This document shows positions 29,038 to 41,871 of a stretch of DNA of 64,000 nucleotides, one piece after another. Below the pieces are notes generated by a model that was not told where the DNA came from, made no database searches, and worked only from the letters and a program-made list of their open reading frames with translations. A program made the translations under genes and the position numbers. Location: sequence record NC_041878.1. The stretch is one strand, 5' to 3'. Every line of letters starts with the position of its first letter. Position 1 is the first letter of the stretch.

Positions 29038-29958
29038 ATGGAAGTACGTAACTGCCGTAACGTTAAATTCAATGGTCAATTCGTTCTTAAAAACCTGCAA
29101 GTATTACGTAAACAATATAAATTCAAATCTGGAGTTTTAACTTTAATTTCAGTTGCAACTCGTGATGGATTAAAATGCGATACTTGTCAGAATGATAAGA
29201 TTCATTTCGAATTGCACCCTGAATACGGTATGGCAATGTATGCTGGGTCAGTACGCATGACTAAGGATCATGATCTTCTTAATTCACTCGAAGGTTCAGA
29301 TGGTGCAGATAACCAGCATCTTCTTTGTGAAACTTGCAATACTTTGCGTGGGAATCGTTTTGCTGAATATAAAGAATTTAAAGATTGGTACGATTCAGTA
29401 CTGGCAAAAGGTCTTAATCCACATACTGCAATTAATAAAGTAAAACGTAATTTCTCTTATATGGATTTCCATAAGAACGGATATTCAGAATCACAACTTC
29501 CAGAAATTTTAGGTACTATTGATATAATTCCTGTTGATGTTAAAAATTCTTTAACTGAACATTTCCTAAAACACCAGGCATTCAAAGCAATTAAAGGTAT
29601 GTTTAGTTTTCACACATTACTATCATATTCTGAGAAAGCATGGAATGATTACCTTAATGAACTGATGGTTATTTTGGTAAAAACTCGTACTAAACAAGAT
29701 ATTCAAATGCGTAATACCAATTTTAATATCTACAAATACAAAAAAAGTAAAAAGAAAATTACAACATTCTTCGTTCATATTAATGAAACTATTAAAGTCG
29801 AATATCAAAAAGTTAAAAAAGACGCACACAAAGTTGGTATTCAAAAACAAATTAAAGAAGTACTGAACAACCAAGAACAATCATTTAAAGTTATTCCTGT
29901 TCGTCCGAACTTCTTCCAGCGTTTGAAGAATGCATTTCAAGTACTGGTAGCAGCATAA
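29038..29958 (+). CDS. HNH-like endonuclease
   Basis: CDTC...MTKDHDLLNSLEGSDGADNQHLLCETCN; shares GN(L/R)FAE..EF.DWY with 25915..26481. Confidence 0.8.
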   Translation: MEVRNCRNVKFNGQFVLKNLQVLRKQYKFKSGVLTLISVATRDGLKCDTCQNDKIHFELHPEYGMAMYAGSVRMTKDHDLLNSLEGSDGADNQHLLCETCNTLRGNRFAEYKEFKDWYDSVLAKGLNPHTAINKVKRNFSYMDFHKNGYSESQLPEILGTIDIIPVDVKNSLTEHFLKHQAFKAIKGMFSFHTLLSYSEKAWNDYLNELMVILVKTRTKQDIQMRNTNFNIYKYKKSKKKITTFFVHINETIKVEYQKVKKDAHKVGIQKQIKEVLNNQEQSFKVIPVRPNFFQRLKNAFQVLVAA

Positions 29959-29961
29959 ATC

Positions 29962-29986
29962 AAAAGGGAGCCAATTGCTCCCTTTC
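29962..29986. terminator. bidirectional terminator
   Basis: AAAGGGAGC-caatt-GCTCCCTTT between convergent genes. Confidence 0.85.
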
Positions 29987-29988
29987 TA

Positions 29989-30648
29989 TTATAGTAATTG
30001 TCTAACTTCGAACTCATAAATTTTGCCGTTAAAGAATGGTGTAGCAGCAGTTCCACTAAAAGCATTCTTACCTACAGTGTAGTTTTGTAGGGTATTGATA
30101 TTAAAAACTTGTGAACTTGATTGAAAAAGAACATCGTTGATGTAAACAAATGAACCTGTACTCAAAAGTTGAATTCTAATTTCCATTGGAGTATTGGCAT
30201 CATTTGTGAATGTTGATGTACTGTAGTTGTCACCTGTATTATTAATACTCATATATGTTTTAAATGGGGCTACTGCGTTTGATGTGTACCCAAATAAAAA
30301 ATAATTTCCGTTGGTTTGTATCGGTCTAGTATCCATTAGAAGTGTAAGATATTGTCCACCTCTATATACTAACCCTGATATTTTATAATAAATTTCCATA
30401 TTAGTTCCAATGGCTAATTTATTATCCTTGAAGTTAAAGTATGAAGAAGCACTCCCGTTAAAATTCATATATGTTCCATATTGGTTTAGACCAACTGTAA
30501 CATCGGCTCCACGGTTTATAGTTATATTATTATCACTTTTGTCTTTAATGTCAGAAATAGTATTAAACTCATGCATACTAAGAAGTACTTTATAGTTCGG
30601 TGGTATGATTACGTTTGCGTATTCAAATAATCTTGGGAATGGTAACAT
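29989..30648 (-). CDS. MLPF-family putative virion protein, concanavalin/LamG-like domain
   Basis: MLPFPRLFEYAN N-terminus; FVYINDVL..FNGKIYEFEV. Confidence 0.8.
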   Translation of the reverse strand: MLPFPRLFEYANVIIPPNYKVLLSMHEFNTISDIKDKSDNNITINRGADVTVGLNQYGTYMNFNGSASSYFNFKDNKLAIGTNMEIYYKISGLVYRGGQYLTLLMDTRPIQTNGNYFLFGYTSNAVAPFKTYMSINNTGDNYSTSTFTNDANTPMEIRIQLLSTGSFVYINDVLFQSSSQVFNINTLQNYTVGKNAFSGTAATPFFNGKIYEFEVRQLL

Positions 30649-30662
30649 GTGAATAGTTTTCC

Positions 30663-31310
30663 TTATGTTGGTCTACGAATTTCAAAACGGTAAATTTTAC
30701 CATATAAGTACGGTGCTGATGGTGCACCATTGTTAACCCACGCATTCTTACCAATTTTATATTGTTGGTTAACCATACTTATTGCTGCGGTAGTGCTAAA
30801 AAATAATGAGTCATTAACAAATAATTGTGTACCAGTACTCCTTATTTTAAATAGCATTTCAATTGGCTCAGCAGATGTGTCAGGGAATGTATTAGTACTT
30901 TGTAATTCACCAGCACTTTGATAATACATCCAAAGAGTATAAGGTGCTGGGGCGTTAGATGAATATCCAGCAACAAAATATTGCCCATTAGTACCTGCTG
31001 GTCTACAATCTATGATTTGATTTGAATATATTCCACTTCTATATGTGAAGTTGCTTATTTTAATATAAATGTCAAGTTCTCCTAAATCCAACAAACTAGA
31101 GTTAAACTCTACCCATTGTGCTTGACCAGTGAAGTTCATATAAGTACCGTATGCATCAACACCAACAGGCAAATAACCAAAAGCAGATACTGGAATTTTA
31201 TTAGGACTTCTATCAACTATGTCAGACGTACTAATAAAATCATATAAAGCAAAAACTGGAACAGAACTAAGATCATTTCCATATTGAAGCATTCTTGTAA
31301 ATGGAAGCAT
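30663..31310 (-). CDS. MLPF-family putative virion protein, concanavalin/LamG-like domain
   Basis: MLPFTRMLQYGN; close paralog of 29989..30648. Confidence 0.8.
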   Translation of the reverse strand: MLPFTRMLQYGNDLSSVPVFALYDFISTSDIVDRSPNKIPVSAFGYLPVGVDAYGTYMNFTGQAQWVEFNSSLLDLGELDIYIKISNFTYRSGIYSNQIIDCRPAGTNGQYFVAGYSSNAPAPYTLWMYYQSAGELQSTNTFPDTSAEPIEMLFKIRSTGTQLFVNDSLFFSTTAAISMVNQQYKIGKNAWVNNGAPSAPYLYGKIYRFEIRRPT

Positions 31311-31409
31311 ATTATAATAACCTCATATTTTTAAAATTATTAATTATTTAGGCTTGACACGATGTTAAATCTTTGATATAATGTCAGTATTAAGTGCGAG
31401 AGGTAGAAA

Positions 31410-32192
31410 ATGATTAGTCGTCGCGAAGTACTGAAACTGCGTATCGCTGAGAATTTTGATGCGATGATGGATACGCTTGAGTGCATCCTGAATCCGTTGA
31501 ACCCAATCAAGGCTATGACCGTGACTGGAGCGAGTGGTATTGGTAAATCTTATAACCTGATTAAACGGTTAGAAGATGCTCATGATCATGGTTATTGTAA
31601 CTTCCACTATCTTAACGGTAAATGTACTGGACTTGGTTTGTATCAGGCATTATATAATGCTCGTCACTTAGGTTCAGTACTGCTGATGGATGACGTTGAC
31701 GTATTTGATACAGAAGATAAGTTGAACCTTCTGAAAGCATCTCTTGAATCTGATGATAATCGAATCATCACTTACATGAGTTCTTCACGTCACTTAGCTG
31801 ATAACGGAATTCCTACTCAGTTCGAGTTCTGTGGTAAGGTTATCTTTATCACGAACAAAGACCTAGTGAAAATTTCCGAAGCTAACTCAGCATTGTCTCC
31901 ACATGTTGAGGCATTGATGACTCGTGGTGCATTCATTGACCTTGAGATCCATGATAACGAAAGTGTTATGGTTCACATTGAGAACATCATGCGTAGTACT
32001 AACATTGTTAAAGGTCTTGGTGTTAGCAGCGATGGTGCAGAGAAGATACTGAACTTCATGTTGAAGAACAGTGCTAATCTCCGTAAGCCATCATTGCGTA
32101 TGCCAGTTCAATTGGCAGGGCTGTACTTGCAGTTCCCTGATAAATGGGAGCAACATGCAATGAAAGTATGTGTTAAATCTGTAAAGGTGTAG
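31410..32192 (+). CDS. P-loop NTPase
   Basis: Walker A GASGIGKS, Walker B LLMDD, IFITN; own promoter TTGACA about 31354. Confidence 0.85.
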   Translation: MISRREVLKLRIAENFDAMMDTLECILNPLNPIKAMTVTGASGIGKSYNLIKRLEDAHDHGYCNFHYLNGKCTGLGLYQALYNARHLGSVLLMDDVDVFDTEDKLNLLKASLESDDNRIITYMSSSRHLADNGIPTQFEFCGKVIFITNKDLVKISEANSALSPHVEALMTRGAFIDLEIHDNESVMVHIENIMRSTNIVKGLGVSSDGAEKILNFMLKNSANLRKPSLRMPVQLAGLYLQFPDKWEQHAMKVCVKSVKV

Positions 32193-32199
32193 TGTAACG

Positions 32200-32523
32200 A
32201 TGGAAATCATAGCAGTACTATCAATTATAGTTTTTATTATCATGTTCGTCGGGTACTGGACATATGCTGATTACTATACTAATTTAAAAATAGATATACG
32301 CCGAATGTATTGGGTGACTCATGTAATTATGTACGGCATTGCTGCTGAATGTATATTACTTTCAATGGGTGAACCTGAACCACTTAAAGCTGCGATAAAA
32401 GCGTGTTCCGCAGTTATAGGTTATGGTACTATTATAATTGTTGCGTCCAGTTTTGGTGCTGCACTTATTTTGTTTTTTGGTGAATCTCGTAAGTACTTTG
32501 GTCGCAAAAGAAATAAACTTTAG
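32200..32523 (+). CDS. 3-TM membrane protein, paralog family (WTYADYY)
   Basis: Hydrophobic; ends YFGRKRNKL. Confidence 0.8.
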   Translation: MEIIAVLSIIVFIIMFVGYWTYADYYTNLKIDIRRMYWVTHVIMYGIAAECILLSMGEPEPLKAAIKACSAVIGYGTIIIVASSFGAALILFFGESRKYFGRKRNKL

Positions 32524-32531
32524 GTGGTGTA

Positions 32532-32884
32532 ATGTTTCATGATTTTATGTACATCAATGGTGTATTGTGGGCTGTAGTTGGTATTATCATGATAATCGGA
32601 AATTTAACTTATGCCGATTATTATACAAAGTTGAATGAAAAATTCGTATCAAACTTTTGGGGTACTTATGCTATTTGTATGGGTGCAGCAATAGTTAACT
32701 TCGTTTTACTTTTGTTATAACGTTGGCGGTTGGTAAAACTGATGGACCAGAACCATTGAATTATGGATTAGGTTGGCTTGCAGTACTGTCCATTATAGTG
32801 TATAGTATCGGTGTTATTTGGGCTATCTGTATCGGATTTTGTAATTTAAAACAATATTTCGGTCGTAAACGTAATAAAATTTAA
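32532..32884 (+). pseudogene. frameshifted 3-TM membrane protein paralog
   Basis: ORF stops at 32720; -1 frame continues GPEPL...YFGRKRNKI to TAA 32882-32884; one extra T in the ACTTTTG run would restore it. Confidence 0.7.
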
Positions 32885-32897
32885 GGTATCAATTAAA

Positions 32898-33668
32898 ATG
32901 ATTAAACTTTGTATTGAAGATATTACACTGAATCAGTTAGAACCTAAACTGCTTCCTTTTGTTCAATGGAAATCTCTGAAAGTTTCCGATCTCGAAGGTG
33001 TCAGTGACGAAATCATTTCGAAGTACATCTTCCAAATGGCACGTCCAGTTATCAAATCTATGATCAAAAATAAGAATATAGATTTTAGTCATCTTACTGA
33101 CGATCAATGGGTTGACCTGGTACATGAAGCATACAACGATGACTATTCATTGTTTGACTACTTCCAGCTTCCGTACAGTGCATTGATGAAATTACTGGAA
33201 TCGGATCGTAATGTTAATCGCTATGCTAGTGCAATGGCAAAAACACAAAAGAATATGCCAGTACAAGAAGCATTACGTCATGCTAGTAATAGTTTCTTAA
33301 ACCATATTCTTCTGACGAATAGCAATCCTGCTCTTATGGATTATATGTTCTCTGAAGAAGGTATTGCACAACTGAAAGAGAAACGCCATTCACAGTATCT
33401 TCAGTATTTGACTTCAGAAGAAGCAAAAAAGATCGGTGCACGTAATATTAAGAACCGTCGCATTAGTCCTGAGCTTCTTCGTCGTGCTGGTGCTTGCCAT
33501 AATGGTGTTTCGTACTGTTCTAAAATGCTTAAAGAACTGAATCTGGAACAGATTACATGGGATGAAGCAATTCATACAATCCGTAATAATCCTAAACTTC
33601 AGAAACGTTCTTCACTTCTGGACTATATGGAATGGATCTATCAACGTAGCTCACACCTTCCAGAATAA
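32898..33668 (+). CDS. helical protein with C-terminal CxxG...TWDE...WI domain
   Basis: RAGACHNG...ITWDEAI...YMEWI. Confidence 0.85.
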   Translation: MIKLCIEDITLNQLEPKLLPFVQWKSLKVSDLEGVSDEIISKYIFQMARPVIKSMIKNKNIDFSHLTDDQWVDLVHEAYNDDYSLFDYFQLPYSALMKLLESDRNVNRYASAMAKTQKNMPVQEALRHASNSFLNHILLTNSNPALMDYMFSEEGIAQLKEKRHSQYLQYLTSEEAKKIGARNIKNRRISPELLRRAGACHNGVSYCSKMLKELNLEQITWDEAIHTIRNNPKLQKRSSLLDYMEWIYQRSSHLPE

Positions 33669-33679
33669 ATTATAAATTA

Positions 33680-33703
33680 AAACTCCCTACGGGGAGTTTT
33701 TTA
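33680..33703 (+). terminator. intrinsic terminator
   Basis: AAACTCCC-tacg-GGGAGTTT followed by T run. Confidence 0.85.
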
Positions 33704-33714
33704 TTGAGGCTCTT

Positions 33715-34065
33715 ATGGTTCTACCTAACGTATTATATAATATTGCAGTACTTCTATTTGTACTTAATCTTTCAACATTAGTAGTACTCTTTGTTGGTTG
33801 GTTAACTCACGCTAATTACTACTATAAACTTTACGAAACTGTTGATGACGTTGCAATTTTTGTACATAGTTTATTCACTGCAATCTTTGGCTTTATTGGA
33901 ATTATTGGTTATCTAGTTGATGATAGCAAACCTCGTCTATTTGATGCAATCATTTCATTAAATGGGTTGTATGTAGCTGCTATACTATTGGTTATAGTAC
34001 TAGGCTATCTTCAAGGTTATATAATGAAGGTGCATAATTACTTCGGTAATAAAAGGGGAAGGTAA
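33715..34065 (+). CDS. 3-TM membrane protein, paralog family (WLTHANYY)
   Basis: Hydrophobic; ends YFGNKRGR. Confidence 0.8.
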   Translation: MVLPNVLYNIAVLLFVLNLSTLVVLFVGWLTHANYYYKLYETVDDVAIFVHSLFTAIFGFIGIIGYLVDDSKPRLFDAIISLNGLYVAAILLVIVLGYLQGYIMKVHNYFGNKRGR

Positions 34066-34403
34066 TGGAAGCGTTACTAAGTATATCTGAATATGTTGTG
34101 TATCCATCATTAATATACATGGCACTGTATGTGTTCATCTTTGTTATGTGGTTGTTCGCAACGGACTTTTACGATGTTGTAGAAGATGTAATCGGTGATG
34201 GTAAAGCATTCTTCACTACGATGTTTGTAATAAGTATACTGAACTATATTATTGGTAAGTTCATATGGTCATGGGCTAACCCAATAAACTACTTGTTTAA
34301 CGGCATTCTCTGCATTATCCTATTGCTCATTATCGGTATTCTGTTTCTAACATTTTGTGAATCATTCAACCAGTACTGCCGAGAAAAACGAGGAAAAGAT
34401 TAA
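34065..34403 (+). CDS. 3-TM membrane protein, paralog family (WLFATDFY)
   Basis: Coupled start; hydrophobic. Confidence 0.8.
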   Translation: MEALLSISEYVVYPSLIYMALYVFIFVMWLFATDFYDVVEDVIGDGKAFFTTMFVISILNYIIGKFIWSWANPINYLFNGILCIILLLIIGILFLTFCESFNQYCREKRGKD

Positions 34404-34753
34404 TGTTATATATTTTTATTAACGGTTACACAATAGTATTTTTAACATTTATTATTGTTACAGTACTGGATTGGGTTTTGGGTATTGATAAACTTAACCC
34501 ATATTTGAATGAAAAGCTTGAAGGTGTAAGTAAGAAAAACGCAGAAGTATTCTTTCCTACAATTGCTTTAACTTTATTGGGTATATTTTCTGCACTCATG
34601 TATTTGTGTACTGGATTTATATTCTTCCACGTTATATACTTCTTTGTAGTCTTTTGTGGCTTAGTGATTTTGGGAATAATAATTGCAGTTTGGGCGATCT
34701 TTAAAGTACTGTCCAGTATTCGGAACTTTATTATTTCCAAGAAAAAACAGTAA
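34403..34753 (+). CDS. 3-TM membrane protein
   Basis: Coupled start; hydrophobic. Confidence 0.8.
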   Translation: MLYIFINGYTIVFLTFIIVTVLDWVLGIDKLNPYLNEKLEGVSKKNAEVFFPTIALTLLGIFSALMYLCTGFIFFHVIYFFVVFCGLVILGIIIAVWAIFKVLSSIRNFIISKKKQ

Positions 34754-34819
34754 TTTGGCTTGACTTAGGCTTTCGAACTCCGTATAATAGCTCCATCAAA
34801 TGATGACGAGGATTTAGAA

Positions 34820-35116
34820 ATGAACAAAGAAGATATGATTGTTGAAGCTGCAAAACGTACTCTTGTTGAACTTAAAAAACAAGTTAAGTCTACACCTCCG
34901 ATGGTTGTACCATTTGCTGTAGTCGGTCTGATTGTAGGCCATTGGTGGGCTACTGTAGTTGTGATCATTCTTATGCTTGTATGGGAAGGTTATGAGCACT
35001 ACAACGATGTAGTTGCAGAAGAAGTTGCAGGTATCAAATCTGCTTCTAAAGAAGCAGCAGACTCTGCCAACAATGTACAGTCTGAAGAAGTCAGTACTGA
35101 AAACAAAGAACAATAA
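34820..35116 (+). CDS. membrane protein
   Basis: GAGG RBS; own promoter TTGACT..TATAAT. Confidence 0.75.
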   Translation: MNKEDMIVEAAKRTLVELKKQVKSTPPMVVPFAVVGLIVGHWWATVVVIILMLVWEGYEHYNDVVAEEVAGIKSASKEAADSANNVQSEEVSTENKEQ

Positions 35117-35167
35117 TAATTATACCCGCCAGCATTGTTGGCGGTTTTTTAATTGCGAGGAAAACAA

Positions 35168-35791
35168 ATGAAACGTACTAAAAATATTAATAAAGACCGT
35201 TTCCGTAAAGTTCATACATTCTGGAAATATAGTGCATTATTCCTGGCTATCTCAGGTAGTACTTTATTTCTGACAGGTTGCGACGATACTGAAAACGTAT
35301 CAGTTTATCAAACGATTCAGGACTGTGAACGTTCTGCTGCGAATGATAAAGCTAAAGAACAATGTGCTTTGGATTACCAAAATGCATTAGCACAAAATAA
35401 AAGTACTGCACCTAAGTACAGTTCACAACGTGATTGTGAAGATGAATTCGGTGCGAATCAGTGTACTACCACGAATAGTACTCATAGTTCTATGATGTGG
35501 TTCCCATTAATGAGCGGTTATAGTTCTTCTCATGCGAACTATCCGAGCCAGCCATTATATTCAAGTACACGTTATAGTTCACCAATGCACGGAAAATTTG
35601 TAGATGCAAAAGGTAATTCATTTGGTTCCTTTAAACCATCTGGTACTTCTTCTGTATCTCGATCAGCACTGTCAAGCAAACCAGCGGTAACAACTACAAC
35701 AACTCGTGGTGGATTTGGTAGTACTGTTTCAACTCATGCTGCACGTGCATCATCATCACATTCTTCCGGTGGTCACAGTTTCGGTGGATAA
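35168..35791 (+). CDS. DUF1190 / YgiB-like lipoprotein
   Basis: MKRTKNIN..FRK, LTGC lipobox, APKY.S..DCEDEFG..QC, W.PLMSGY, RGGFG tail. Confidence 0.85.
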   Translation: MKRTKNINKDRFRKVHTFWKYSALFLAISGSTLFLTGCDDTENVSVYQTIQDCERSAANDKAKEQCALDYQNALAQNKSTAPKYSSQRDCEDEFGANQCTTTNSTHSSMMWFPLMSGYSSSHANYPSQPLYSSTRYSSPMHGKFVDAKGNSFGSFKPSGTSSVSRSALSSKPAVTTTTTRGGFGSTVSTHAARASSSHSSGGHSFGG

Positions 35792-35793
35792 AA

Positions 35794-35818
35794 GAAAAGC
35801 CCCAAAAGGGGCTTTTTT
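35794..35818. terminator. bidirectional terminator
   Basis: AAAAGCCCC-aaaa-GGGGCTTTT. Confidence 0.85.
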
Positions 35819-36470
35819 AATTTGTGAGATTTAATGGTGGTGTCGGAACTGTAATAGTACTGCCACCATTATATAATGCTTTATTTGTAATCCGTATTTG
35901 ATCATAGTACGCAAGTGAATTTGTTTCATATCCACCAATGCGTAACGGAGTATTATTATCTCCCCAAATATCAGATGTTAAAGTAATTTTAAGTATACCA
36001 TTGATGTACAAATAAACATTACCTGAATGTTGAAGGATACAGAAATGTGTCCATGTGTTTAATGGTATGTTAGCACTTGACGAAACTGAACCACCTTTTG
36101 CTCTACCTTGTAGGTATAGACTTCCACTGTATATTTTCAAACCACTAGTGGTTCCTGTTCCTGAACTCATGTACCAGTTGTTTGATGTATTGTTTGTGCA
36201 ATACGCATACCATTCAAGTGTGAAATCCTGACCAGTACCAATAGTTGTATCAGCACGATCCACAGCACTGATTGTATAGTACCCGTAACGAAAATCATAG
36301 CTGTTCCCAATAATAGCGGGTGTTGTTGGTACAGGAACAGAGCCAACAGTATTAATAACCCTTGTTGGTTTAGCAATATCAATTTTGCCGTTGTTTGCAT
36401 GTAATAGGAATTTTGTAGCGTATTCAACTATTACATTTGCATATTTTATGATTCTTGCGAATGGTAACAT
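35817..36470 (-). CDS. MLPF-family protein, LamG domain
   Basis: DFTLEWY, NTWTHFCI, LYING, YDQIRIT. Confidence 0.85.
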   Translation of the reverse strand: MLPFARIIKYANVIVEYATKFLLHANNGKIDIAKPTRVINTVGSVPVPTTPAIIGNSYDFRYGYYTISAVDRADTTIGTGQDFTLEWYAYCTNNTSNNWYMSSGTGTTSGLKIYSGSLYLQGRAKGGSVSSSANIPLNTWTHFCILQHSGNVYLYINGILKITLTSDIWGDNNTPLRIGGYETNSLAYYDQIRITNKALYNGGSTITVPTPPLNLTN

Positions 36471-36479
36471 AATAGTTCC

Positions 36480-37151
36480 TTATTTTATCTCTGTTATTTT
36501 TAATTTAGCAAGTGAACCACCAAAATAATATGGTTGCCCACCAACTTCAGCACTAACATATGATCCACCAATAGATAGCTTATATCCAATTCCGTATGGA
36601 TATAGAGGAAATGTTTGTGTATTATTGTAATAAGAACTTTTCACCGTAATACCAGAATTCTTTATATATGTGAATGTCATAGTTTCCCACGACATATGGT
36701 TAGTTCCATTCATTAAAACTCTATTATATGTTTCCCCGCTATCTAAAAAGTACTGGAAATATGTTGATGGAAATTGGTTTAATGCACATGTGATTCCTGG
36801 AATTCTTTGTGAGCTATAATTACCAGTTTCCCATAAACCTTCCATCACTGAAGTTCTGTTAGTTTTAAACTGTATTACTACCTCAAAACTTCTATTAGTA
36901 AGATCTAGTTTTGAACCACTTATAATTGGTGGTGTTACATAATATCCTGCACCACTAAATTTAAAAACGTTTTGTCCTAATTGTGGATCGTATTGGACAG
37001 AGCCAGCAGTTCCAATTGTACTAAATTGTGCTCCTGCATTATCTCTGATAAAATTGTCACCAATTGTTTGTGTACTGAAATCAATATCTAACAGTACTGT
37101 ATTTGGAGGTAAAATATTTGCATATTCTACCAATCTTGGAAATGGTAACAT
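36480..37151 (-). CDS. MLPF-family protein, concanavalin-like domain
   Basis: MLPFPRLVEYAN; paralog of 39651..40322. Confidence 0.8.
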   Translation of the reverse strand: MLPFPRLVEYANILPPNTVLLDIDFSTQTIGDNFIRDNAGAQFSTIGTAGSVQYDPQLGQNVFKFSGAGYYVTPPIISGSKLDLTNRSFEVVIQFKTNRTSVMEGLWETGNYSSQRIPGITCALNQFPSTYFQYFLDSGETYNRVLMNGTNHMSWETMTFTYIKNSGITVKSSYYNNTQTFPLYPYGIGYKLSIGGSYVSAEVGGQPYYFGGSLAKLKITEIK

Positions 37152-37159
37152 AATATCCT

Positions 37160-38017
37160 CTATTGAAATCTATATTGTGAATTTATTGGTGAAGTTGAAT
37201 ATCCATACATACTATATACTTTAACGCCATCTAATGATGTATATAATGCTCCGCGAGATATACCAACTGAAGTGTTAAAACCGACTTGCGACCAAGTATT
37301 AGTACTAATACTATATTTGTACAATCTTTCAGCATTAACACAGTAGATGGCATCATTATATTCATTATAAGTCATTCTACCTTGCATTGATGCCATAGAA
37401 CTCCATGTTCCAGTAGAAATTAAAAATTTCTGACCACTAGAACCTTGACAGTACAAATAATTTCCATCAGTTGTCATATCACCAGCCAACGAATTAGTAA
37501 TACTAGAACTTGTTAGTGTAGTCCATGCATTAGATGCAATGTCATATGAAAATAATTGTGAACCGCCGTCACTACCCCATAGATATAGCTTTCCATTATT
37601 TGTACTTACAAACCTACAATGGTGTCTAGCTGATGGCTTATTAGTACTCGTTGTATTTTCAGACCAAGTATTAGATGATATATCGTATATAAAAAATCTG
37701 TTTTGCATGGAACCAGTATATCCACCAAACATATATATTTTTCCATTATATCCAGCTAAACCTGAACCATGCATTGCTAATGTTCCATTAGCTAATGGTT
37801 CCCATGTTTCAGTACGAGTGTCAAATCTCCAAAATTCATTATTATAATCACTGCCAACTACTGCACCACCATACATATAACCATAGTTATCTAAACTAGT
37901 ATATCCAAAAGAAAATCGTGCACTAGGGGAAATAGTAGGTGAAATTTGGATTCTTGTTCCGGTATTATTTTCTTTTCTGATATTTCCATATTCTATCAAT
38001 CTTGGGAATGGTAACAT
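37160..38017 (-). CDS. MLPF-family protein, Kelch beta-propeller
   Basis: Repeated IYMFGG...YD...NTW Kelch motifs. Confidence 0.85.
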   Translation of the reverse strand: MLPFPRLIEYGNIRKENNTGTRIQISPTISPSARFSFGYTSLDNYGYMYGGAVVGSDYNNEFWRFDTRTETWEPLANGTLAMHGSGLAGYNGKIYMFGGYTGSMQNRFFIYDISSNTWSENTTSTNKPSARHHCRFVSTNNGKLYLWGSDGGSQLFSYDIASNAWTTLTSSSITNSLAGDMTTDGNYLYCQGSSGQKFLISTGTWSSMASMQGRMTYNEYNDAIYCVNAERLYKYSISTNTWSQVGFNTSVGISRGALYTSLDGVKVYSMYGYSTSPINSQYRFQ

Positions 38018-38721
38018 TATACTTCTCCGCTTAATTCATGTGTATATATTTTTGCAATTGTCGCATTATCTAATAGATAATCATACATCCTGTGTCCAGC
38101 AATTCCCCCAGCTAACGGTGTAGCGGTTGGGTTACTTGGATAGTACCCTAAACCAACACTACGTGCTGTTGTTGTACCAGTACCGTAACCAGTAAATGTA
38201 GGACTTACTGACTGAGTTTTTATCAATACTCCATCAGCATAAAAACGTAAAGTATTAGTACTCCTATCATAAGAATATACAGCATGTACCCATGTATTAA
38301 CAGGCATTGAGTACTGACCAAAATAAGAATTAGTAGTACTCGCAGTATTCACACAATAAAAATTCCGTACTAACGATGGAGAACCACCAGTATTGTAACT
38401 GAACCCAATATTACCAGATGCATTTATGTATGCCTTTGCAGCAGTACTAGTAGTGTATACCCAATTCATTGCAGTCCATGATGAATTTGCATAAACTATT
38501 TCATCATAGTATAATCTCTGTGCTCCATTACATACAAGAGCTTGTTTACCACCAACTGTACCTATTGTACCAGATGTATAAGTGAAGTTCGCTTGTGTAA
38601 ATTTAGGATTTGTGGTATCACCATGATTAGCAATATCAGCACGTAAGGGTAAGTACACCAATGGTGCTGGAAGAATATTTGCAGCATTTCCATATTCTAA
38701 CATTCTTGAAAAAGGTAACAT
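38017..38721 (-). CDS. MLPF-family protein, LamG domain
   Basis: SWTAMNWV, NTWVHAVYSYD, FYADG, RMYDYLL. Confidence 0.85.
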   Translation of the reverse strand: MLPFSRMLEYGNAANILPAPLVYLPLRADIANHGDTTNPKFTQANFTYTSGTIGTVGGKQALVCNGAQRLYYDEIVYANSSWTAMNWVYTTSTAAKAYINASGNIGFSYNTGGSPSLVRNFYCVNTASTTNSYFGQYSMPVNTWVHAVYSYDRSTNTLRFYADGVLIKTQSVSPTFTGYGTGTTTARSVGLGYYPSNPTATPLAGGIAGHRMYDYLLDNATIAKIYTHELSGEV

Positions 38722-38730
38722 AATATCTCC

Positions 38731-39573
38731 CTATTTGATTTTGTAAAATTTAGTTCCGTTTACTGTCCAACCTGTATCATATGAACATGCTATAGCAACT
38801 TCATTTCCACCAGCAGGAGCAGTATTGTTAATTTTTGTCCATACATTAGTGTTTATACTGTACTGCCATAAACCCGCCGTTGGCCCAACTGCATAAATGT
38901 AATTACCCATTCTACTTATTTTATTACGTGTTCCAATTCCTGCACATGATGCAAGGGTTTGCCATGTATTACTTTCTATATGATAACGTGCAAATGAAGT
39001 ACTGTACATCATATACAAATAACCAGAACTATAAATTAAACCTACCTCATCACCATTACTGCTACCAAAAGGTAAAGTTGCTAAACCTGTGGTACTCCAT
39101 GTATTTTGTAACACACTATATCTCCACATAGCTGAACCTTTAACTGCATAAACATAATCACTATTATCATAGTTCATCGCAATACTTAAATCATACGTGC
39201 TTTGTGGTAGTACTGCCATCTGACTCCAAGTATTCAAGATTGTATCATATCTGTCAAATCTGTTCGTACTACTATATCCACCAGCACAATAGATATATCT
39301 GCTATCAGCACATATTCCAATGTTTCTAACATTTATTGGTCTTGTTGTAAGTAAGGTGACTGCACCTGAAACTGGATTCAGTTTATATATTTGGCTTGTC
39401 TGGTTAATGAAATATATATTGTCTCTGTATGTACAAGATCTTGACCCATATGTTCCAAAGGTTGAAACGGTGGTATATTCTTGTACTGTTCCTGATAATT
39501 TATTTGGGTTTGAATCATCATAATTAAACACTACTGTATTTCCGTACTCATTGATTATAGAAAAAGGTAACAT
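38731..39573 (-). CDS. MLPF-family protein, Kelch beta-propeller
   Basis: YIYCAGG..RYD..LNTWS repeats. Confidence 0.85.
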   Translation of the reverse strand: MLPFSIINEYGNTVVFNYDDSNPNKLSGTVQEYTTVSTFGTYGSRSCTYRDNIYFINQTSQIYKLNPVSGAVTLLTTRPINVRNIGICADSRYIYCAGGYSSTNRFDRYDTILNTWSQMAVLPQSTYDLSIAMNYDNSDYVYAVKGSAMWRYSVLQNTWSTTGLATLPFGSSNGDEVGLIYSSGYLYMMYSTSFARYHIESNTWQTLASCAGIGTRNKISRMGNYIYAVGPTAGLWQYSINTNVWTKINNTAPAGGNEVAIACSYDTGWTVNGTKFYKIK

Positions 39574-39650
39574 TTCAATCCCTCAAATTTATTAATATTA
39601 TGTATTTACTTACAAAAACAGAAAAAGCCCAACCTAAGTTGAGCTTATAA

Positions 39651-40322
39651 TTAACTTATAATCTTTAATTTTAAATACTTCATGTACCCATAAAAATTAG
39701 TTGCCGTAGGAGTTTTGAAATAACCACCTACACCAAAAGACTGTCCATTAGAACATTCAAATGCAGTATACGTGGACTGATTGGCAATAACACCATTTAC
39801 ATATCTGGTAATAGTTACATTTGAATCAACTTTTCTGTACACAACTCTTTGCCAATCACTTACTAACTGACCATCAACAAAATGTCGAACAAATGTACTA
39901 GCGTTCTGTAGAAAGTACTGATCATTTCCTGCGTACTGTAATATCTGATGAGCAAATCCAGGTATGTTATTCGTTACATCTGGATAATATCCTGTACCAT
40001 AAAGTAATTGAATTGCGTTAACCGCAGAGTTTCTTTTGTACATAACATCGAACTCATAATTCTTCCCGTTCAATGAGATAGATGCATCTAGCGGGGTACT
40101 GAAAACTGCACCATTGAAATACATAACATTTGCATTCAACATATTATCCAGTACGATTTTACCCTCCAAAGAATTTAACTTAGTGAAAAGTCTATTCTTA
40201 TAACTATAATCAATTATATTAGTATCACCCAATGCTTGTCGAGAAAAATCTAAATTTATTTCATACTCATTGGAAACTACTTTTTTATTACCGTACTGTA
40301 ATAATCTTGGAAATGGTAACAT
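39651..40322 (-). CDS. MLPF-family protein, concanavalin-like domain
   Basis: MLPFPRLLQYGN; FYGYMKYLKL end. Confidence 0.8.
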   Translation of the reverse strand: MLPFPRLLQYGNKKVVSNEYEINLDFSRQALGDTNIIDYSYKNRLFTKLNSLEGKIVLDNMLNANVMYFNGAVFSTPLDASISLNGKNYEFDVMYKRNSAVNAIQLLYGTGYYPDVTNNIPGFAHQILQYAGNDQYFLQNASTFVRHFVDGQLVSDWQRVVYRKVDSNVTITRYVNGVIANQSTYTAFECSNGQSFGVGGYFKTPTATNFYGYMKYLKLKIIS

Positions 40323-41085
40323 ATAAATTCCCCTCTATATCTTTTAATATCCTGTATTTACCATTGTTATAACTATATAAATATCTACTATCCGCACATA
40401 ACATAGAATTGTTTAATTCAGATGTTCCTAATGATGCAGTACTCCATGTGTCACTTAACATATCATATATGTACAGATTACTATTACCTATACCATATAA
40501 CTTGTAATTGTTATACGCCGTGCCAGTACTATAACTCAACTTCAACGGAGGAAATGTAAGTTCTTCCCAGGTCCACGTACTTATATCTATCCGATACATA
40601 CCATTGTATAAATCAGCAGCCCATATGTAAAAGTAATTAGTCTCACCAATATTAACAAAATATATCATCGCTTGTGATAATTTTCCTGGAGAATTCGTAG
40701 TAACAATAACATCCCATGTGTCAGATTCAATACTATATCTATACAACTTATCACTTACCTGTGTGCCATTACTATCCTTTACACCACCGTACAAGTATAT
40801 GTGAGAATTATAATACGTACTCGTTGTACCATATAAAACTTCAGGCATAGATGATAATTGATGCATGGTATTATCTATAGTACTGTACCTGTACAAATTA
40901 TTAGTTACCTGTGTACCATTCCATCCACCACATATGTATATGTCTGACTGTACTGAACATACCATATGACCATATAATTGTGTGCCACCTAGTGTAATTC
41001 CTTGCGGTTCTACAACTTCCATATCTCCATCAATAATACCAGGTGCTGAATTTCCATAAGCACTTACTATACTAAACGGTAACAT
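40288..41085 (-). CDS. MLPF-family protein, Kelch beta-propeller (possibly truncated)
   Basis: IYICGG/IYLYGG repeats; reads 35 nt into the next gene. Confidence 0.8.
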   Translation of the reverse strand: MLPFSIVSAYGNSAPGIIDGDMEVVEPQGITLGGTQLYGHMVCSVQSDIYICGGWNGTQVTNNLYRYSTIDNTMHQLSSMPEVLYGTTSTYYNSHIYLYGGVKDSNGTQVSDKLYRYSIESDTWDVIVTTNSPGKLSQAMIYFVNIGETNYFYIWAADLYNGMYRIDISTWTWEELTFPPLKLSYSTGTAYNNYKLYGIGNSNLYIYDMLSDTWSTASLGTSELNNSMLCADSRYLYSYNNGKYRILKDIEGNLYVTISKIITVR

Positions 41086-41095
41086 TTTAAATCTC

Positions 41096-41184
41096 CTATT
41101 GATTATTTGTTAATGTATTAGGGAATGAACGATCATCTCCATAAATTATTCTTACAGCACCACCAATTGCGGAAAAGGTAACAT
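41096..41184 (-). pseudogene. deletion remnant of an MLPF-family gene
   Basis: AAGGAG RBS, MLPFPQLVVL* (41184-41152); shifted frame gives GAVRIIYGDDRSFPNTLTNNQ*. Confidence 0.7.
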
Positions 41185-41871
41185 ACTTTTATCTCCTTCT
41201 TATTTTTTTATACGTCTCTATTATACTATGATAGAAACTAATATAGGTATTTACCCACTTTATCATTCCTAGACACTCCTTAGAACACATGCTATAATCC
41301 CCCTAGAAGCTCGTAGAACGCTCTACAACGCACGTGTTTGATTCCTGTAGTATCGCTATTGCGATATCGAAAGGATTCAAACTAGCTAAAATAGCGTTCA
41401 CGATATTCTATGTATTAATATACAGTACTGTAATAATACACAATATGGATAAGTTATCAGTACTATATGTTTGTACAGGAAAAGATAGGTTCTATCTTAT
41501 AGTACTATAGAAGTACAGTTCAGTACTGTTGACCCCTTCCGCTATATCCGTTCCTGAAGTCGAATGCGAATAGCACAAAAAGTACAGCAACCTTTTTTCA
41601 AAAATGATAACATGAGGTTGGGAAAAATCTGGAGTGATCGTGAAATCAAATACGAATCAAGGAAATTTTGGAGTACCCTTCAGACTTTTTCTGAGATCTC
41701 GAAAGTACACCAAAGTAAAGACGCATCGTAGAAATTACGTTCAATACTATAATACAAATACAAAGTACTGAAAATTTATACAGTACTGTTATTATGCACA
41801 GTGCAATATAAATTTTAAAATCAGATGAAAAAAGTACTTGACGAGGGATGATGGAATTGATACTATAGCTA

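Follow-up and report, generated by a model that had tools for sequence, protein, structure and literature searches.

A shared 12-residue N-terminal peptide on diverse virion proteins of Pectobacterium phage vB_PcaM_CBB and related jumbo phages, and its possible role as a docking tag

In phage T4, unrelated and fast-turning-over proteins (IPI-III and Alt) share a short N-terminal peptide, the capsid-targeting sequence (CTS), whose last residues are [L/I]-x-E and which the prohead protease cleaves off. The Klebsiella podophages of the KP32/KP34/K11 type have a conserved N-terminal docking peptide on their secondary receptor-binding proteins (Latka et al. 2019, PMC6872550; PMC13352976). These peptides allow a cassette-like exchange of specificity. 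Each phage has one or two such cargoes, which are trimeric beta-helix depolymerases held by a socket that is a T4 gp10-like branching domain or an adaptor. RaK2/phiK64-1 and CBA120 build branched tail-fiber complexes in which conserved N-terminal parts (D1/D2/XD/anchor domains) bring many binding proteins together (PMC10253068, PMC3622015). Here, we describe a peptide of 12 residues, beginning MLPF, that heads a family of virion proteins in Pectobacterium phage vB_PcaM_CBB (KU574722 / NC_041878), a 378-kb Rak2-like jumbo myovirus whose tail bears hair-like appendages of ~119 nm (PMC5259590). The window, meaning the whole stretch of DNA analyzed, comprises 64,000 nucleotides, is 100% identical to the CBB genome, and lies at genome positions 314380-378379. 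We see about an even chance that this MLPF peptide is a retained docking peptide, loading interchangeable binding modules onto one virion site.

The MLPF arrangement shares with the podophages above, and with the adaptor-bound tailspikes of SP6/K1-5, a short body-independent N-terminal peptide, an exchangeable binding protein, and a (here putative) fixed particle site, and MLPF is likewise a conserved short peptide on unrelated bodies. It differs from the KP32 type in its 9-17 small lectin/propeller cargoes per genome, its unrelated motif, the lack of a trimeric tailspike or depolymerase, and a socket that is only putative. RaK2 belongs to the same wider Rak2-like group, but its large tailspikes carry folded N-terminal domains of 50-110 residues, whereas the MLPF tag has ~12-17 residues and is predicted to be unfolded; moreover, MLPF genes are missing from RaK2, where the syntenic position holds no counterpart. 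Positional equivalence with the RaK2 tail-fiber cluster was considered and rejected, the flanking genes being adjacent in RaK2 with only small plus-strand genes between them. Like the T4 CTS, the MLPF tag is an N-terminal peptide of about ten residues on unrelated, rapidly exchanged virion proteins of a T4-related myovirus, but Glu is not conserved in it, and peptides from virions still contain it.

The proteins themselves, their presence in the virion, the Kelch domains, the late promoters, and two paralog pairs are already published (PMC5259590). In the CBB, phAPEC6, RaK2, XbC2, Eneladusvirus, and fEgEco12 papers, and by a full-text motif search of the searchable literature, we found no description of the shared N-terminal peptide. 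The same sources yielded no mention of the tag on all six CBB-specific virion proteins or on the phAPEC6 RCC1 proteins, of its occurrence in 83 or more genes with at least four different folds, of its absence from RaK2, or of its retention on the mature protein and concerted evolution.

Nine complete tagged genes, all on the minus strand, were identified in the window (Table 1). Open reading frames (ORFs) and translations agree exactly with an initial annotation of the window, which had reported these nine genes with their N-termini, the divergence of the proteins after the tag, and the separation of two clusters by plus-strand genes. Its count is correct for the window and too low for the genome, where a whole-genome search found two further complete tagged genes, CBB_144 and CBB_247, giving 11 in CBB. 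The tag follows the pattern M-L-P-F-x-[R/I]-h-h-x-Y-[G/A]-N in CBB, and the consensus of the clade is M-[L/I]-P-F-x-[R/I/Q]-[I/L/M]-h-x-Y-G-N, frequently with h-x-P next. An ORF start of MLPF followed by Y-[G/A]-N is exclusive to the tagged genes in CBB, and the motif was not found at any position in the other CBB ORFs; its sharing is not due to chance. We rejected, on the same grounds, the idea that the tag imitates a stretch within or at the end of some other CBB protein, the motif occurring only at tagged N-termini. Beyond residue 14, most pairs of tagged CBB proteins have no BLAST similarity, and matches were seen only for 536/537, 549/553, the three Kelch proteins and, weakly, 551/553. 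Because the DNA upstream of the tagged start codons is not conserved, except for the ribosome-binding site, and because the tag codons vary synonymously, selection acts on the peptide.

Absence from virions had been named in the initial annotation as an outcome that would refute its proposal, and the 2017 data place the family in the particle. Electrospray ionization tandem mass spectrometry of purified CBB particles found CBB_144, 247, 536, 537, 548, 549, 551, 552, and 553 (PMC5259590), which amounts to 9 of the 11 tagged proteins compared with 54 of 554 proteins overall (P = 2e-8). According to the CBB paper, six structural proteins confirmed by mass spectrometry (MS) are present in CBB and missing from its close relative GAP32, and the hair proteins should be sought among such CBB-specific structural proteins (PMC5259590). 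All six of these (CBB_144, 247, 536, 537, 551, and 552) are tagged. Additionally, the MS-detected RCC1 proteins of phAPEC6 (gp003, 005, 006, 007, 009, 010, 549, and 551) begin with MLPF[A/G]RM.KYGN without exception (8/8). Three virion peptides in the deposited CBB list, from CBB_536, CBB_553, and CBB_548, cover tag residues (Table 1); therefore, the tag stays on the mature protein, at least from residue 7.

The bodies behind the tag belong to different folds. CBB_550, CBB_552, and CBB_554 all match Kelch families (Pfam PF01344, PF13964, and PF24681) above the curated cut-offs. In the window, Laminin_G_3 (PF13385, curated cut-off 27.6 bits) is exceeded by CBB_548 (47.8 bits) and CBB_551 (47.9 bits) only; outside it, CBB_247 stays under the cut-off at 19.7 bits. 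CBB_536, CBB_549, and CBB_551 match phrog_6011 ('virion structural protein'). No Pfam match was found for CBB_536, CBB_549, CBB_537, or CBB_553, and CBB_537 and CBB_553 join the LamG-like group solely through BLAST paralogy with CBB_536 and CBB_549. A PapG_C match of CBB_536 (E = 0.096) was discarded as noise. The AlphaFold2 model of CBB_549 (27 sequences) is a beta-sandwich with a mean predicted local distance difference test score (pLDDT) of 88, and its top Foldseek matches are ConA-type carbohydrate-binding jelly rolls (E ~1e-6, 10-16% identity), including arabinanase AbnA domain 4 and CBM40. The model of CBB_550 is all-beta with repeated four-strand units (predicted template modeling score 0.80). 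The division into six LamG-like and three Kelch proteins made in the initial annotation is therefore acceptable, being clear for the three Kelch proteins and backed by the ConA/LamG-type fold of CBB_549, with the reservation that Laminin_G_3 passes for two proteins only. A homolog search with CBB_549 returned 10 close relatives, all of them tagged, and PDB sequence searches with CBB_321, CBB_149, and CBB_549 gave nothing usable.

In the CBB_549 model, tag residues 1-10 have a pLDDT of 55 and are not packed on the domain, and in that of CBB_550, residues 1-19 fall under a pLDDT of 50 and are not packed on the propeller. The tag is thus predicted to be a free, flexible extension on two different folds. 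With the tag unpacked in both models, a role as the closing 'velcro' strand of a propeller or as a part of the jelly roll is not supported. A donor-strand extension of the chaperone-usher type, which goes with an incomplete Ig-like fold, was rejected, the jelly roll and the propeller being predicted to be complete without the tag.

The family extends well beyond CBB. We collected 83 tagged ORFs from about ten related genomes of roughly 350 kb. Their bodies are domains of 200-400 residues (LamG, Kelch, RCC1, and glycine-rich), among them 43 RCC1-like propellers, 10 Kelch propellers, and at least 11 Laminin_G_3 domains; the remaining bodies, LamG-like and glycine-rich families among them, gave no Pfam match. 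The whole genomes of six relatives were scanned for ORFs of at least 100 residues that start with M[L/I]PF in the characteristic cluster. The counts of such ORFs were as follows: CBB, 11; Xanthomonas phage XbC2, 11; Salmonella phage Munch, 16; E. coli phage 121Q, 10; Serratia phage BF, 9; and GAP32, 3, with two more truncated at the ends of its record. None was found in the whole genome of Klebsiella phage RaK2. Among 2.9 million IMG/VR contigs, a degenerate DNA pattern of the tag matched only 8 (one of 109 kb, the other seven of 349-371 kb) and was confined to the MLPF clade; in 185,579 bacterial genomes it hit five isolated single sites in unrelated taxa and no clusters. The family recognized in the initial annotation is therefore real and larger than it appeared there, with 11 CBB genes, at least four body classes, and a spread through the whole clade except RaK2.

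Each genome heads all its body classes with its own variant of the tag, for example MLPFPQLV.YGN in XbC2, MLPFARMVKYGN in 121Q and phAPEC6, MIPFARIL.YGN in Munch, and mostly MLPFPIISNT in BF. Over residues 2-12, tag identity is 0.70 between different body families of the same genome and 0.54 within the same family between genomes, a difference reached in 0 of 2000 label permutations. This homogeneity within genomes fits the prediction of a shared acceptor that co-evolves with the tag. Homologs of the LamG-like bodies carry another tag, M-x-E-x-[L/M]-[L/M]-x-G, in unrelated phages, namely Agricanvirus AH06, Iapetusvirus PhiEaH1, Serratia PCH45, and Vequintavirinae 4MG and CR3, with the starts MNEMLMLG, MLENLLTG, MLELLMARG, MFESNLMG, and MEEMLLVG seen across these five phages. 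This second tag (M-x-E-x-h-h-x-G) has the same architecture and partly the same body family (phrog_6011-type LamG-like) as the MLPF system, but a different peptide in a different phage clade. We found no MLPF tag in the five genomes and no M-x-E tag on the CBB proteins, all of which start with MLPF. Nothing points more strongly to the peptide as a separate address module than the same body under a head peptide that differs between lineages. In PhiEaH1, the annotated start of gp002 is probably too far upstream, because the M-x-E motif is internal to it (…IMEANLLGG). Turnover is fast: two RCC1 genes are among the few proteins less than 50% identical between the near-identical phages fEgEco12 and Ecwhy_1.

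The tagged proteins are in the particle and keep their tag. This tag does not depend on the fold of the body behind it, is confined to the clade, and is homogenized within each genome. We suggest that the flexible MLPF peptide would direct small, late-expressed modules into the virion through one shared acceptor site. The modules would comprise lectin-type jelly rolls (ConA/LamG), Kelch and RCC1 propellers, and a glycine-rich domain, in a set that changes over time, and the acceptor would co-evolve with the tag within each phage lineage. Presumably displayed on the outside, the modules might act as accessory adhesins on an acceptor that could be part of the fiber or hair apparatus, on tail or capsid hairs. 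The plug-in docking tag proposed in the initial annotation thus receives partial support from virion presence, retention, the free extension, concerted evolution, and tag replacement, and from these we infer incorporation by means of the tag. Several observations weigh against this explanation. The tagged Kelch proteins CBB_550 and CBB_554 were not detected in CBB virions. Residues 1-6 (MLPFxR) are absent from the detected peptides, and trimming before residue 7 is possible. MS of whole virions cannot separate the outside from the inside of the particle, and gene conversion in tandem arrays could be a partial source of the homogenization within genomes. Finally, the link to the hairs is only a correlation, because GAP32 has five tagged genes and is not reported to be hairy.

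We regard it as unlikely that the peptide is instead an uncleaved capsid-targeting signal, an analog of the CTS of the T4 internal proteins, that loads variable proteins into the prohead, where they would form an inner body or be ejected with the DNA. A short N-terminal peptide common to unrelated, rapidly exchanged proteins matches the T4 pattern exactly, CBB encodes a T4-type prohead core protease (CBB_255), and the MS data are equally compatible with an inside location. Additionally, phAPEC6 has an inner body for which its authors proposed RCC1-like proteins as candidates, but that proposal derives solely from the name 'chromosome condensation'. The three MS peptides span the position of the would-be [L/I]-x-E cut and retain the tag, and Glu occurs at position 9 in only 12 of the 83 tags. 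The bodies are jelly rolls and propellers, not small highly charged proteins (isoelectric point 4.7-9.6, median 7.6), and their closest folds are carbohydrate-binding modules. The lectin and propeller folds argue for an outward-facing role, without proving it. A cleaved CTS of the T4 type is ruled out by the virion peptides and the lack of a conserved Glu.

The top face of Kelch and related propellers is typically a binding site for short peptides. It is conceivable, and in our judgment quite improbable, that the tagged proteins are the hairs themselves, forming bead-on-a-string filaments of ~119 nm either by stacking of the tags or because a propeller or lectin domain holds the peptide of the neighboring subunit. 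This would agree with the peptide binding typical of Kelch-type propellers and with the tag on every MS-detected structural protein that hairy CBB has and GAP32 lacks. The hairy phages phAPEC6 and fEgEco12 belong to the tag-rich Asteriusvirus group, and the consulted passages on RaK2, which has no tagged genes, do not mention hairs. However, at least four unrelated folds would each need a pocket for one peptide, GAP32 combines its five tagged genes with no reported hairs, and the CBB MS table gives only modest numbers of peptides per protein, fewer than would suit an abundant filament.

We give very little credence to a tag without any sorting or docking role, kept for expression or stability (translation start context or N-terminus protection) and propagated through duplication and gene conversion: tandem arrays, which make conversion easy, hold most of the copies, and the Arg-6 codon is AGA in 8 of 8 CBB cases (e.g., window 30631-30633 and 37134-37136) against a genome share of ~16% of Arg codons, which hints at a nucleotide-level constraint or shared descent, but the other tag codons vary synonymously, the upstream regions differ, the motif is kept on the dispersed CBB_144 and CBB_247 and across genera on bodies less than 30% identical, no other late or structural CBB gene uses it, and a general expression effect does not explain the different, equally conserved tag on homologous bodies elsewhere.

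Returning to the docking peptide, we screened for its acceptor among CBB ORFs that tblastn matches in each of the five tag-bearing genomes but not in RaK2. The screen yielded 22 ORFs, mostly small; the large structural ones are CBB_147, 148, and 149, CBB_225 and CBB_226, and CBB_321. CBB_147/148/149 are three tandem beta-rich paralogs of 902-916 residues (phrog_3573) whose homologs are annotated as minor tail or tail-fiber proteins and occur also in Agricanvirus phages; they are a candidate hair scaffold. The tagged gene CBB_144 sits 700 bp upstream of them. CBB_225 is a DUF4376 protein, and CBB_226 is a long-tail-fiber protein of 1553 residues. When single domains are considered, specificity to the clade extends to the C-terminal 170 residues of CBB_227, grouped with the long-tail-fiber module CBB_225/226, and to residues 70-345 of CBB_322. 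The virion proteins CBB_321 (536 residues) and CBB_322 (847 residues, 30 MS peptides) both have an HExxH motif (HELQH) in similar context and look helical and acidic by eye, and are therefore poor fiber candidates. Thus, CBB_321 is an unlikely acceptor despite a distribution that matches the clade exactly. CBB_321 and CBB_322 may rather be particle-borne metallopeptidase-like proteins.

A second hairy phage is phAPEC6, with hairs at three rings on the tail (phAPEC6 paper). As a tentative and rather doubtful extension of the docking explanation, the hairs of CBB-, phAPEC6-, and 121Q-type phages might be a programmable display, in which a fiber scaffold (candidate CBB_147-149) or the tagged proteins themselves carry 10-17 exchangeable lectin/propeller heads through one 12-residue peptide that co-evolves with its socket. 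If the docking function is true, the peptide would be a portable handle (a signal of 12-17 residues) for loading foreign proteins onto jumbo-phage virions, and it would give a role in the particle to the RCC1 "DNA condensation", Kelch, and LamG proteins of Rak2-like jumbo phages. It would also open a molecular route to the hairs, for which two papers made no assignment, and would explain how a phage of this size maintains a wide and fast-changing adhesin set without rebuilding its tail. Furthermore, a record annotation now copied through dozens of records would prove misleading. In the public records of 121Q, Munch, phAPEC6, BF, and XbC2, tagged RCC1 propellers are annotated as 'DNA condensation protein', 'regulator of chromosome condensation', 'S-layer protein', 'Ig domain-containing protein', or 'PE-PGRS family protein'. 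In phAPEC6, several tagged ORFs are unannotated (e.g., starts 2434, 6063, and 7325 of the compared stretch), and the annotated start of gp002 seems to lie upstream of the MLPF start of this gene (3614 of the compared stretch).

Table 1. Tagged genes of phage CBB and accompanying features (W, window position; G, genome position; MS, mass spectrometry)
Feature	Position	Strand	Residues	Tag	Body or description	Virion MS
CBB_536	W 29989..30648	-	219	MLPFPRLFEYAN	LamG-like (phrog_6011)	virion protein; peptide LFEYANVIIPPNYK, residues 7-20
CBB_537	W 30663..31310	-	215	MLPFTRMLQYGN	paralog of CBB_536 (39% identity)	virion protein
CBB_548	W 35817..36470	-	217	MLPFARIIKYAN	Laminin_G_3; ortholog of GAP32_530	virion protein; peptide YANVIVEYATK, residues 10-20
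CBB_549	W 36480..37151	-	223	MLPFPRLVEYAN	ConA/LamG-type jelly roll	virion protein
CBB_550	W 37160..38017	-	285	MLPFPRLIEYGN	Kelch propeller	absent from list
CBB_551	W 38017..38721	-	234	MLPFSRMLEYGN	Laminin_G_3; no GAP32 homolog	virion protein
CBB_552	W 38731..39573	-	280	MLPFSIINEYGN	Kelch propeller; no GAP32 homolog	virion protein
CBB_553	W 39651..40322	-	223	MLPFPRLLQYGN	LamG-like, paralog of CBB_549	virion protein; peptide LLQYGNK, residues 7-13
CBB_554	W 40288..41085	-	265	MLPFSIVSAYGN	Kelch propeller; overlaps CBB_553 start by 35 nucleotides	absent from list
Tagged-gene remnant	W 41152..41184	-		MLPFPQLVVL	own ribosome-binding site; stop codon after the tag (10 codons)	
CBB_144	G 75120-75884	+		MLPFSPLIVYGN	glycine-rich-domain family	virion protein
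CBB_247	G 173132-173866	-		MLPFPRMFEYGN		virion protein
Late-promoter-like CTAAATA	W 31345..31351	-			41 nucleotides upstream of CBB_537 (Porf_537)	
Late-promoter-like GTAAATA	W 39603..39609	-			36 nucleotides upstream of CBB_552 (Porf_552)	
Late-promoter-like GTAAATA	W 40355..40361	-			39 nucleotides upstream of CBB_553, within 3' end of CBB_554 (Porf_553)	
Late-promoter-like GTAAATA	W 41248..41254	-			70 nucleotides upstream of remnant	
Terminator-like hairpin	W 29962..29986	-			directly after CBB_536 stop codon	
Terminator-like hairpin	W 35795..35816	-			directly after CBB_548 stop codon, cluster end	
Terminator-like hairpin	W 39625..39646	-			between CBB_553 and CBB_552, divides seven-gene cluster	
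CBB_538-547	W 31410-35791	+			block between the two tagged clusters	
Consensus sigma-70 promoter	W 31354-31382				of plus-strand block	
Consensus sigma-70 promoter	W 34760-34788				of plus-strand block	
CBB_535	W 29038-29958	+			HNH endonuclease	
CBB_248	G 173868-174344				endonuclease VII	
CBB_147/148/149	G 76602-84833				tandem paralogs, candidate hair scaffold	
CBB_321, CBB_322	G 232189-236342				HExxH proteins	virion proteins

The initial annotation had placed TAAATA late-type motifs upstream of the cluster heads, and this was borne out. On the minus strand of 29900-41500, [ACG]TAAATA occurs at four sites only, each 36-70 nucleotides upstream of a tagged start codon, and three of them (Porf_537, Porf_552, and Porf_553) are in the T4-like late promoter table of the CBB paper (PMC5259590). 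The fourth, in front of the remnant, is probably a promoter at the cluster head. Based on these sites and the terminator-like hairpins, the transcription units are 554-553, 552-548, and 537-536. CBB_551 and CBB_550 overlap by one base (38017) and, with the CBB_554/553 overlap, the array seems to combine translational coupling with internal promoters.

The remnant, whose start (41184) coincides with the end coordinate given in the initial annotation, is the stump of a lost copy and looks like the deleted first gene of the CBB cluster. Its PQLV variant is the tag form typical of XbC2, where the cluster begins with a tagged gene of 688 residues. CBB_536/537 are inserted between homologs of GAP32_520 and GAP32_521 and adjoined by the HNH endonuclease gene CBB_535; likewise, CBB_247 adjoins the endonuclease VII gene CBB_248. 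Nuclease genes beside the dispersed tagged genes may hint at how the cassettes move. The plus-strand block between the clusters has sigma-70-like promoters and encodes small paralogous membrane proteins with three transmembrane segments (CBB_539-545) and a DUF1190 lipoprotein (CBB_547), and it is conserved in GAP32, XbC2, and RaK2.

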